64,000 bases of DNA from Dimorphilus gyrociliatus (taxonomy: Eukaryota > Animalia > Annelida), in contig CAJFCJ010000019.1 in NCBI GenBank assembly GCA_904063045.1, forward strand, positions 2,920,684-2,984,683, in the 5' to 3' direction. Under the pieces are notes generated by a model. The model was not told where the DNA came from. It did not search any database and saw only the letters and a program-made list of their open reading frames with translations. The position numbers were made by a program, and so were the translations under genes. Positions 20,158-24,502 of the stretch are shown piece by piece. Each line of letters opens with the position of its first letter. The first letter of the stretch is position 1.

Positions 20158-23100
20158 ATGTTATGCGTAATACTAGTAGCGGGACATGGTACCCTTTTAG
20201 AAGAAGAAATTCAGGTGAAGCTTGATCTAATATTATATTATCGCTCATAGTCATATTCACGACAGGCTTCGCAAAAGTACTCGTCCCTAGCAGGAGTCCC
20301 TAAAGCCCTCCTTCCCACACATAAAGGTAAAACAATTCTTGATGCATGGTGGTCTGCAGTGAGAAGCAGACAACTTTTTTCCGATGTACTCCTAGTAACA
20401 AATGCCGCAAAATATAAACACTACGAGCGATGGGCAACAGCATCCGAATTCCCCATACACAATATTATAAATGACGGAACAACTACTGAATCATCGAGAT
20501 TGGGTGCATGCTTGGATTTACAATTAGCTTTGGCTGTGAACAAAAAACAGTTTGACTCAATTCTGGTGGTAGCTGGTGAAATGTTATTTGAAGAGAGTAA
20601 GCTAGATATGGTGACTGTTATTCAACAATCTCAAAAATTCGATAATTTGGCTGTGTATTATGAACTAGGAGAAAATGAGTCTCCTGAAACAAGGGGAATT
20701 GTTGAAATAGAACCGGCTAGTGGGAGGATAAAGGCTTTGTATGAGAAGCCAATCGCCTCTGTGACTAATTCTAAATTGGCGAGTGTTGTATTTTATTGCT
20801 TAAACTTTCGCACTATTCAAACATTGTCAGAGTTTAATATTCTTCATAAAGAAAGTCCTCGTAGTTTAGGACATTTCATGTCATGGTTAATAGAAAGAGA
20901 TACACCTATATACGGCCTAAAGTTACCAACAGCTTTCAAATTAATAGGATCAAATGTTACTTTGGAACAATACGAATTAGCAATAGAATATTTTTCTGAC
21001 TTGGCCTCTAAGGAAGTAAGATCCATAACGAAACGGGTATTCGCAAGGGTAGGTCTAATGGGCAATCCATCTGATGGATTTAATGGGAAAACTATTGCTC
21101 TTTCAATAAAAAATTTTTGGGCTGATGTTACGATAACAGAATCTGATAAATTAGTGTTATGTCCCCATCCATTAAATGATCCGACTGAATTCGGATCCCT
21201 TTGGGATTTACACGCTATATCTCGTAGGGAAGGATATTTAGGCGGATTAAGATTGGTTCAGGCAACTTGCAAGAAATTTTATCAGTATTGTTCTGATAAA
21301 GGGTATATAAAGTGGACGACATGTATATATGGACACCGTAAATTTTGATAGGCCAATTTTTAATTAACGGTTAAAATTGTTTGTCCTCTGCAAATTAGTA
21401 TTTTTTGTCTAAATTTATATAGAAAAAGAGTTAAATTGACATAATATTGAAAAAAATGATAATATTTTGTGAAGATTATTAGCAAAAATTTTTAATAATT
21501 TTCATAAGTTTTTTCTTTATTTGGCCGCGCGACATGTTTATTGGAACATTGAGTTGACATCTGGTTTGACATTCAAATAGACGTCTCAAACAAAAAAATT
21601 TTCAACTTTTTTCCTGTTTTAAGTTAAGTTAATTTGTTATTGAATATTAAAAATTACTGTACATAATTTATATTGTATTTTTTTAATTATGGTTTGGAGT
21701 CAAGATATAAGGGATTTGGTAATCAAGAAATATAGTGAAATAGGCAAATTAAGGGCAACAGCAAGAGTTTTAGGAATGGCACCATCATCAATTAGCAACA
21801 TACTAAAGTATAAGAAGCCAGAACAAGACAATAGGGGAGGTCCGAAGAAGCTTTCCGACAGAGAGATAGCGAGGATGAAAAGAATTTTAAAGAAACTGAA
21901 AGATAACTAGCAAAGAGTGACAGCAGCAAAGATATTAAAAGAATTAGAAGTAGATGTAAGCATAAGAACAATACAGAGGGAGCTGAAAAGACAAAATTTC
22001 AAATATAAAAGAGTCAGACAAAGAACTGATCTCACCTCCAAAGACTGTAAACGCAGAAAAGCGTACTGCCTCAAAGTTATTAGCGAAAATCTAGACTGGT
22101 CTAGGGTTATTTTTACTGATGAGGCTAGGTTTTCGCTAAGTGGACCTGACGATTTTAGGACTTGGACCAGTAACAGCGAAAAGGACTTCAGGGTCACAAA
22201 AAATATGGGGAGAGGTGGAGTATTGGTGTGGGGGTTGATAACCTCTGACCAAAAATTTAACTATTTAACATTGTTCCAATAAACATGTCGCGCGGCCAAA
22301 TAAGAAAAAAAAATCAGAAAACTATGGTAATTTCTATAAAAAAAAAAATATGTAAAAACGTACCTAACTGCTGTTTTAAAGAAATTTATATAAAATTGCA
22401 AGTTTAACCTATTATTAAACACTAAAAAAAAAAAATAATAATCTTTTTTCATCACGAAAAAGATTTTTAATATTTGGCCTATAAAAATTTCAGGTGTTCC
22501 AACATACCTGTCGTCCACTTTATATATATTTTTTGTAATTCCTTGATTAATCTAAACTGCACGCAGGATAGCCATAGGAAAACGAAACTTTACTCTTAAA
22601 TACGACACAAACATTCCTCGTCAAGTCGGTCTAGCTGGATCTAGTGCTATTGTAACTGCCACTTTACAGTGTCTGTTAAGTTTTTATGAGCTAAACTCTA
22701 ACGATATGCCATTACATACTCAACCCCAGTTCGTTTTGGATGTTGAAACAGAGGAACTTTTTATACAGGCAGGATTACAGGACAGAGTGGTCCAGACCTA
22801 CGAAGGTCTTGTTTATATGGATTTCAGTAAAGAACTGTTTCAGCAACAGAATTATGGGCATTACGAACGACTTGATAACGTTGAATTACCACAATTTTTT
22901 CTTGCTTATTTAAGAGATCCGTCTGATTCTGGAAGAATACATAGCGACGTTGGCGCAAGGTGGCGCCGAGGCGACGAACAAGTTGTTAAGGCTATGAAAA
23001 AATTCTCTCTTCTCACTGATCAGGCTCGGTAAATTATTGAGAAACAGACTATAATTTATGTAATTAATAATTCATATTTTCAGTGAAGCTATTGAGGCGA

Positions 23101-23437
23101 AAGATTGGGAAACCTTGAAACTTCTAATGAGTGAGAACTTCAATTTGAGGAGGTTAAATTAAATACTTTTAATCGAAACATGACTGACTATCGTAATAAT
23201 TTTTCAAGAGAGATTTACACTGACCCAGCCTTAGGAGAGAGTAATCTACGTTTAATTGAAATAGCGCGATCTCATAACGCGTCAGCTAAATTTCCAGGCT
23301 CAGGAGGTGCTGTTGTTGGCCTGTGCACCGATGAAGATAGCAGAGAGAAGCTGAAGTTGGCTTATCAGAGTGAAGGATTTGTGTTCGTCGATATTTTACC
23401 TAACTCTGGAGGTCATAATCATAATCCTGTTAAATAA
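20158..23437 (+). CDS. gkup: Glucuronokinase fused to an N-terminal nucleotidyltransferase (putative uridylyl pyrophosphorylase) domain
   Basis: MLCVILVAGHGT..GVPKALLP (NTP-transferase start); ARVGLMGNPSDGF, YDTNIPRQVGLAGSSAI, AGLQDRVVQTYEG, KFPGSGGAVVG (GHMP kinase). Intron 2 (21303-22566) contains the transposon. Confidence 0.92.
21306..22524 (+). mobile_element. Defective Tc1/mariner-superfamily DNA transposon (IR/DR type), internally deleted
   Basis: Imperfect terminal inverted repeats of about 53 bp (tataaagtggacgaca..ataggccaa) flanked by TA; perfect 32-bp inner inverted repeat at 21517-21548 and 22272-22303; transposase remnant with HTH, VIFTDEARF and GGVLVWG. Confidence 0.93.
21689..22282 (+). 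pseudogene. Tc1-like transposase pseudogene
   Basis: In-frame TAG at 21908-21910 splits the HTH region; the frame ends shortly after the first catalytic Asp motif, so the rest of the DDE domain is missing. Confidence 0.88.
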
Positions 23438-23480
23438 AAATAAATTTAAACTGAAAGAGAAAGGTTGTTTTTAGAATTTT

Positions 23481-23850
23481 AGCTGTCTGCCTTTGAGGAA
23501 TGGAGAAAGTACATCTTCGTACAGTCATCTTTCCCCCCGGCATGTTTATTTTAACGAATTCGGTTTAGACTAATGCACTTTATTATTGAGTCAGTGATGT
23601 GAGTGAGGTCCTCGTCCAACAATCGCAATCACTGGGACTCTTTACTGTACATAAGCGCCATTTTGATTCCGAACAGGTTGACTTCAACGCGTCACGTTAG
23701 CCACTTTTTTTTAATTATTTTATTCAATTCATCTCCATGTAGACTGAACAGTGGATGAAAACAGACTACGTGTGCAGGGAGAGAATTCTAAGTCAGGGTT
23801 AGAAAAGAGGGCCGCGAGACGCCACCCCCATCGTGACGGGCCGAGGTCTG
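23481..23850 (-). ncRNA. TERC: Candidate telomerase RNA (template-pseudoknot plus box H/ACA domain), about 370 nt; 5' end uncertain
   Basis: Minus strand: CUAACCCUGAC template (23802-23792) after a U-rich linker; P2a AAUUCUCUCC/GGAGAUGAAUU; P2b GUAGUCUG/CAGUCUAC; UUUUC loop; P3 CCACUGUU/AAAAGUGG after an A-rich tract; a long arm closing next to an ANANNA H box (23551-23546); 3' hairpin GGGGAAAG/CUUUCUCC and UGCC/GGCA; ACA at 23486-23484. Confidence 0.72.
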
Positions 23851-24502
23851 AGTATTTCGTAATTTTTGGTACGAAAAGGCCATAACAACAGCAGCGCCAC
23901 CTATTTTGAAATAGCTTTTGTACTAATTATTTTAACGTTGTACTTAACAAGAGTTTTATTATCTACTTATATTTGCCCCAACTTAAATCTCCTTAAAGTT
24001 ACTTTATCATCTCTTAAATTATTATTTTTAATATTTTACAGCTGAAAGAGTAGAATTTGATATAACGAAATCTCTCGTAAATAAATGATTAGAACACAAG
24101 AGCATTATTTACTTTCTTTTATAGCCTGCTTATCAACCCTAGGTAATCGCGACCTTCAGCGTTGAATTTCGTTATTGTATGATAAGACCATCGAATGAAA
24201 TTGATATTGAACCAACTTATGTACTTGAATTCAACTAGTATTGTTTTCAGTCATTCTCTTCTTGAAAATATTAGAATAAGTTGATGAAAAACGCGAAATT
24301 CAGGACAAATTAAATTTAAAAATACATTCAAAATATCTATTTTGACCATTAAGATGTTCAAGTGCCCCCCAAATCTTAAAAAAAATGACACTCCAAAGTG
24401 TAATAAATTAAATTTCTAGTTCCAGCCGGTTTAATGTAAAATAAAAATGCTTGAATTTCGACGGAGAAGTCACAACGGTTTGGTAAAGCAAAGAGGCGAA
24501 GT

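Follow-up and report, generated by a model that had tools for sequence, protein, structure and literature searches.

A candidate H/ACA-type telomerase RNA gene in the compact genome of the annelid Dimorphilus gyrociliatus

We analyzed a 64,000-nucleotide stretch of DNA from Dimorphilus gyrociliatus (the window, whose coordinates are used throughout) and found that a locus between a gkup-like gene and ABCC4 is very probably an H/ACA-type telomerase RNA (TR) gene of this compact-genome annelid, with a predicted templating function. An earlier note on this DNA had read the locus as a TR gene, a view that is supported by the order of its elements, covariation, synteny, RNA contigs and an Rfam alignment. 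Our own assignment draws on the domain order, the Rfam match, the presence of the locus in RNA-derived contigs, conserved synteny, an invariant template, compensatory changes in the helices, and the end of similarity to a distant relative just past ACA+3. We infer the transcript strand, exact ends, protein partners and templating activity of the candidate TR. As predicted from its sequence, the candidate matches the published architecture of protostome TRs point by point; the annotation is new, and the layout is already known from annelids and molluscs. Among the papers searched, none ties Dimorphilus gyrociliatus to a telomerase RNA.

Genomic setting and parts of the candidate gene

Genes of this worm are very compact, with introns of about 56 nt, and near-identical sequence occurs under two organism labels. 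With its ends as estimated here, the candidate TR is 363-369 nt long. The plus-strand gene upstream of it encodes NTP_transferase and GHMP-kinase-C domains, and we therefore call it gkup-like; its stop codon is at 23435-37, followed by AATAAA at 23439-44. The next plus-strand gene after the candidate is an ABC transporter (ABCC4). The candidate is thus oriented tail-to-tail with gkup, from whose 3' end it is separated by an estimated 6-26 nt, and head-to-head with ABCC4. These are the flanking genes that the earlier note had named, and every motif that it quoted is found on the minus strand where, and in the order in which, it had placed them. The parts of the candidate, as revised here, are the following.

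23481..23849, minus strand: candidate telomerase RNA gene; 3' end taken as ACA+3 (23481), 5' end estimated at 23843-23849
23860..23872, minus strand: A/T-rich upstream block TACCAAAAATTA
23832..23844, minus strand: P1 5' strand (outer part 23844-40, inner part CGUCACG 23838-32), pairing with 23696-23684
23807..23829, minus strand: P1.1 hairpin, ending 4 nt 5' of the template
23792..23802, minus strand: putative template CUAACCCUGAC (23802-23792)
23778..23787, minus strand: P2a 5' strand, pairing with 23736-23726
23762..23769, minus strand: P2b 5' strand GUAGUCUG, pairing with CAGUCUAC at 23746-39
23747..23761, minus strand: J2b/3 (UUUUCAU, 23761-55), then P3 5' strand CCACUGUU (23754-47); the Rfam alignment places CUGUUUU here at high posterior probability
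23726..23746, minus strand: P2b 3' strand (23746-39) and P2a 3' strand (23736-26), from the alignment and the fold of the distant relative
23701..23725, minus strand: A-rich J2a/3 (23725-09) and P3 3' strand AAAAGUGG (23708-01), from the Rfam alignment and comparison with the distant relative
23684..23696, minus strand: P1 3' strand (CGUGACG 23696-90, outer part 23688-84), pairing with 23844-32
23553..23679, minus strand: P4 (23679-69 / 23563-53) with one long arm, a putative eCR4/5-like domain, from covariation in both relatives
23543..23552, minus strand: hinge AAAAUAAACA, with box-H-like AAAAUA / AAAUAA (23552-46)
23488..23542, minus strand: 3' hairpin (UGCC/GGCA, GGGGA/UCCUC, GA/UC, GUAC/GUAC, loop GAAGAU), from covariation with the distant relative
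23484..23486, minus strand: box ACA, conserved, 3 nt before the inferred 3' end at 23481

The block that aligns with the distant relative extends from 23851 to 23481. Identity falls to 36% immediately past 23481, and similarity collapses at 23480-23470, between the candidate and gkup. The ACA is conserved, and the 3' end originally proposed, 3 nt after it, coincides with the point where similarity stops. Near the other end is the sequence CTCAGA with its A at 23849, which we read as an Inr-like start element. Further upstream, the A/T-rich block TACCAAAAATTA is kept in the distant relative although the adjacent upstream bases carry an indel, and it is possibly an RNA polymerase II core-promoter element.

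Two observations concern the neighboring gene. The poly(A) signal of gkup (23439-44) faces the inferred TR 3' end (23481) with about 40 nt between them. Since one RNA assembly joins the two, their converging transcripts may overlap until they are processed. An ORF on the plus strand at 21917-22282, between the NTP_transferase and GHMP-kinase parts of the gkup-like gene, encodes a Tc3/mariner-type transposase HTH domain and is probably a transposon remnant in a gkup intron.

Conservation, covariation and transcripts in two relatives

A search with the LIG4 ORF of the window led to an ORF of 84% identity on a genomic contig of 50 kb from a distant relative. A contig walk from LIG4 then led to a locus (L130) at which the arrangement gkup-candidate-ABCC4 is kept, in agreement with the position originally claimed for the gene. 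The TR loci of this sample (L130:11445-14817) and of a second one (L131:5301-8709) are identical, and the called ORFs of the accompanying ABCC4 gene have lengths of 314/113/595 and 292/110/607 residues respectively, a difference that points to distinct haplotypes or strains or to errors of assembly. A second, closer relative (organism C) was also compared.

The candidate TR differs from that of the distant relative by 85 substitutions in 365 positions. Seven base pairs have changed on both sides and still pair (a number also given by RNAalifold): 23784/23729 in P2a, 23750/23705 in P3, 23670/23562 in P4, 23637/23591, 23632/23594 and 23630/23596 in the arm, and 23519/23512 in P8. Covariation in relatives had been suggested beforehand as a check on the proposal, and the outcome favors it: compensatory pairs number 7 where chance would give 2.55 (P = 0.009, 5000 random placements), and broken pairs number 9 where it would give 25 (0/5000 random placements). 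The broken pairs are mostly at helix ends; a tenth pair, in the P1.1 apex, was lost through a 2-nt deletion. Fourteen further changes are one-sided wobble exchanges that keep the pairing.

In organism C, the core at 23680-23811 (132 nt) contains a single substitution, at the bulged U23731, and there are four differences at 23812-23833. For comparison, the gkup exon has 17/147 differences (about 12% in neighboring coding exons) and the arm has 20/151. None of these 20 arm substitutions breaks a consensus pair: one is a G-C to A-U change, four are wobble exchanges, and the rest are in loops. When substitutions in the arm were placed at random, 0/400 placements preserved the fold equally well.

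The template is the best-conserved single segment of the candidate, with 11/11 positions identical in the distant relative and no change in organism C. Its core, CUAACCCU at 23802-23795, is complementary to GGTTAG, and the template as a whole is complementary to more than one telomeric repeat; the 10-mer occurs only once in the window. Its position, 23802-23792, is the one that the earlier note had given. The G, A and C that follow CUAACCCU are invariant in both relatives where readable, and the bases on either side, 23791 and 23803, vary, both differing in the distant relative. Annelid telomeres generally consist of TTAGGG, as would presumably those of this worm; the 64-kb window is free of (TTAGGG)3 arrays. 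It is conceivable, if rather unlikely, that G23794 in the alignment part of the template is functional: through an rG.dT wobble with the realigned DNA end it would adjust translocation and repeat-addition processivity, or now and then lead to variant repeats.

P1, which closes the template-pseudoknot domain, consists of 12 pairs, and in the distant relative two one-sided wobble exchanges (G.U to A-U and U-A to U.G) keep its pairing. Two alternatives for P1 had been offered earlier. One of them, CGUCACG (23838-32) with CGUGACG (23696-90), is P1; the other, GCGUCUCG, had to be abandoned and belongs, as its apex, to a different hairpin (23829-23807) that had gone unrecognized. This hairpin, P1.1, has a 6-bp base (GGGGGU/GCCCUC) that is identical in the distant relative, where an unrelated loop, with a deletion of 2 nt, takes the place of the apex. 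By analogy, P1.1 is likely to be a template boundary element of the protostome type.

The pseudoknot elements first described for this locus–P2a, P2b, a U-rich loop, and P3 after an A-rich tract–are all where they had been placed, P2a with a bulged U23731 and P2b with one U.U mismatch. P2a shows a U-A to C-G change at 23784/23729 in the distant relative plus two wobble changes, and P2b shows no change among the window species and the two relatives within the stretches that could be read. In P3, CCACU(G)UU at 23754-47 pairs with AA(A)AGUGG at 23708-01, and the distant relative has U-A to C-G at 23750/23705 and C-G to U.G at 23751/23704. The weak spot of P3 is formed by two U-A pairs beyond a G.A mismatch, which are not both kept in the distant relative. 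The sequence points to a P2b/P3 pseudoknot with a U-rich J2b/3 and an A-rich J2a/3, and to a putative triple helix.

P4 and the long arm beyond it contain 4-5 compensatory pairs, and their fold is retained at 13-29% divergence. The compensatory changes in the distant relative are at 23670/23562, 23637/23591, 23632/23594 and 23630/23596, and two P4 mismatches become pairs there. P4 and the distal helix of the arm as first drawn hold up, and the register of the middle helix is ambiguous: in the distant relative GCGCUU/AAGUGC remains intact, and in organism C one of its pairs is lost. By analogy with other protostome TRs, the arm is a putative eCR4/5-like TERT-activating domain.

The window's hinge matches the box H consensus ANANNA, and the aligned hinge of the distant relative, UUAUUAAACA, has only 2/3 of the consensus A's in any register and hence no perfect match; box H is loose. 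In the 3' hairpin, the basal UGCC/GGCA and apical GUAC/GUAC pairings suggested previously stand. The upper stem GGGGAAAG/CUUUCUCC does not, as C23509 would have to serve in it twice and the distant relative cannot form it intact; the supported register is GGGGA/UCCUC (23536-32 / 23499-95), which is kept through a G.U to A-U change at 23535/23496. The distant relative also has C-G to U-A at 23519/23512 (P8) and keeps the loop sequence AAGAU. The loop at 23513-23518 is GAAGAU in the window and CAAGAU in the distant relative, with A-G kept at loop positions 3-4. The vertebrate CAB box, with the consensus ugAG, has A-G likewise; the loop may be a Cajal-body localization signal.

Our RNA evidence consists of unstranded assembled contigs. 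Run X2 (organism label A) yielded a contig that spans 23207-23843 at high depth without a single difference and stops at 23843; spliced gkup exons, with a GT..AG intron on the plus strand, are joined to it. Four runs from organism C, which the splicing of gkup identifies as RNA, have coverage of the candidate that stops at 23833-23838 with nothing upstream, and they leave positions 23452-23518, which separate gkup from the candidate, uncovered. The edges of the RNA contigs, at 23833-23843, are thus near the proposed 5' end of the TR, as approximate edges of unstranded assemblies. Many conserved G.U pairs, and exchanges between G.U and A-U or U.G and C-G in the comparison with the distant relative, work only on the minus strand, and the strand was assigned on this basis. 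The contigs fit an expressed candidate TR, with the minus strand coming from the G.U covariation. A 175-nt piece, 23598-23772, also turns up in a coral metatranscriptome (run X1), where it has a single mismatch and runs straight into a sequencing adapter; the coral sample therefore contained this worm or a very close relative.

The unbroken junction in the X2 contig between spliced gkup exons and 23207-23843 could be taken to mean that the conserved block is a 3' untranslated or downstream regulatory region of plus-strand gkup, with no separate minus-strand gene. We consider this highly unlikely because AATAAA (23439-44) lies right after the gkup stop codon and there is no plus-strand poly(A) signal near 23843, because organism C has the coverage gap at 23452-23518 and similarity to the distant relative collapses at 23480-23470, between both genes, and because the G.U pairs of the covarying helices would be C.A on the plus strand. 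A separate TR gene on the minus strand is the reading that we retain.

Rfam models, control loci and known telomerase RNAs

At gathering thresholds Rfam gave no matches in the whole window, in keeping with the earlier remark that TRs are missed by standard annotation. With relaxed thresholds, the sole match in the region is Telomerase-vert (RF00024), with 17.4 bits and E = 0.019-0.05 for the stretch searched. The alignment spans only model positions 11-190, comprising P1, the template, P2 and both P3 strands. A search with covariance models, which the earlier note had put forward as a check, thus aligned the template-pseudoknot part but stayed below the threshold, at 17.4 bits against a gathering score of 70 bits. 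Extrapolation from the E-value gives about one chance match this strong per genome of this size, and the score would not stand alone genome-wide. A sub-threshold score against this model is what is expected of a protostome TR, and the locus should not be filed in the vertebrate family.

We also scanned metagenomes for the combination of template, CUGUUUU and A6, and found at least 120 loci. Among the matches listed (120 control loci), 0/120 had the P2b + P3 arrangement, and nhmmer found no similarity to the candidate TR; these loci were rejected as TR homologs and are chance matches. None of the 20 motif-matched control loci that were run gave an Rfam telomerase match, and a 17-bit match would have shown. 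Since these controls have the same three motifs, the Rfam match of the candidate reflects its helices and not the motifs alone.

Fold prediction, another of the proposed checks, gave a divided answer. The window sequence folds only weakly better than its shuffles (z = -1.3), whereas the minimum-free-energy fold of the distant relative's own sequence reproduces P1, P1.1, P2a/P2b, P4, the arm and the 3' hairpin (z = -4.3). The weak z-score of the window and the sub-threshold Rfam score are what one would expect if the motifs had come together by chance in intergenic DNA. That explanation is hardly credible in view of conservation above that of neighboring coding exons, the significant excess of compensatory changes, the kept synteny, the presence of the locus in RNA assemblies, and the negative motif-matched controls (0/20 for Rfam, and 0/120 for P2b + P3 among the matches listed).

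A conserved, structured RNA with a 3' hairpin, an ACA and a hinge might instead be an H/ACA small nucleolar or Cajal-body RNA of the usual kind, or some other structured noncoding RNA, that has no telomerase role and carries a telomere-like 8-11-mer by chance; by our own arithmetic about a dozen telomere-permutation 8-mers are expected by chance in 64 kb. We judge this to be improbable. The 5' half is a closed template-pseudoknot domain and not an H/ACA guide hairpin, and Rfam aligns it to telomerase RNA only; the template is identical at 11/11 positions with both flanking bases varying; and P3 of the pseudoknot covaries. A search of Rfam with the 3' half alone gave no match and no snoRNA family, so it provides no link to a known snoRNA family. 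Telomerase RNA remains our interpretation of the locus, and it can be compared with TRs that have already been described.

Logeswaran et al. 2020 (Logeswaran, Li, Podlevsky, Chen) reported 82 new animal TRs, seven of them from annelids: Capitella teleta (365 nt), Arenicola marina, Hydroides elegans, Eisenia fetida, Lumbricus rubellus, Olavius algarvensis and Amynthas corticis (PMC8480181). Protostome TRs have a template-pseudoknot core, a P1.1 boundary element, no CR4/5-P6.1, one or two long P4 stems, and an H/ACA end (PMC8480181). The arm and P4 of the candidate have no P6.1. The earlier note had not seen a canonical P6.1 either and had worried about it; its absence is normal for protostome TRs (PMC8480181), which resolves that concern. 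Compared by published description, the annelid TRs are of similar size to the candidate, about 365-440 nt (PMC8480181), and share with it a core closed by P1, a P1.1, the lack of P6.1, long P4 stem(s), and an H/ACA domain with the ACA 3 nt from the end. The candidate differs from the published annelid set in having a single long arm. Its host is not Capitella, because the LIG4 ortholog of Capitella teleta is only 53% identical to that of the window. The window species appears to be absent from the seven published annelid species, and the other published lengths do not fit.

The TR of the apple snail Pomacea diffusa, which has been functionally reconstituted, has a short 8-nt template core, a P1.1 boundary, an eCR4/5 made of long P4 stems, and an H/ACA domain (PMC8480181), and the candidate, from sequence alone, has the like. 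The mollusc RNA is 408 nt long, carries two stems (P5 + P6) on P4, and has had its activity shown by experiment (PMC8480181), whereas the candidate has one arm. With vertebrate TRs (RF00024) the candidate shares CUAACCCU with N-A-C/U-U-N-AGAA after it, the motif CUGUUUU where P2b meets J2b-3, a run of A's preceding the 3' strand of P3, closure by P1, and an H/ACA 3' domain. It differs from them in lacking CR4/5-P6.1, in having P1.1, in a 3' half that does not align to the model, and in the alignment region of the template, where it has G and vertebrates have A.

Proposed function and meaning

We propose that RNA polymerase II would initiate near 23843-23849 and that the 3' H/ACA module would recruit the dyskerin complex, with the mature 3' end set 3 nt past the ACA. 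P1 would close the template-pseudoknot domain, and P1.1, 4 nt upstream of C23802, would halt reverse transcription at the 5' edge of the template. CUAACCCU would template GGTTAG, and the GAC after it may aid realignment of the DNA end via an rG.dT wobble. TERT would be bound and activated by the P2b/P3 pseudoknot, one of whose joining strands is U-rich and the other A-rich, together with the P4 arm as the equivalent of eCR4/5.

TRs evolve so fast that standard annotation overlooks them. The candidate leaves the picture of how animal TRs are built unchanged; it adds a well-supported candidate TR from an annelid with a compact genome, its orthologs in two relatives, and covariation data for the protostome pseudoknot, P4 and eCR4/5-like arm. 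It also opens the way to experimental study of telomerase in this lineage, with relevance to regeneration, ageing and miniaturized genomes.
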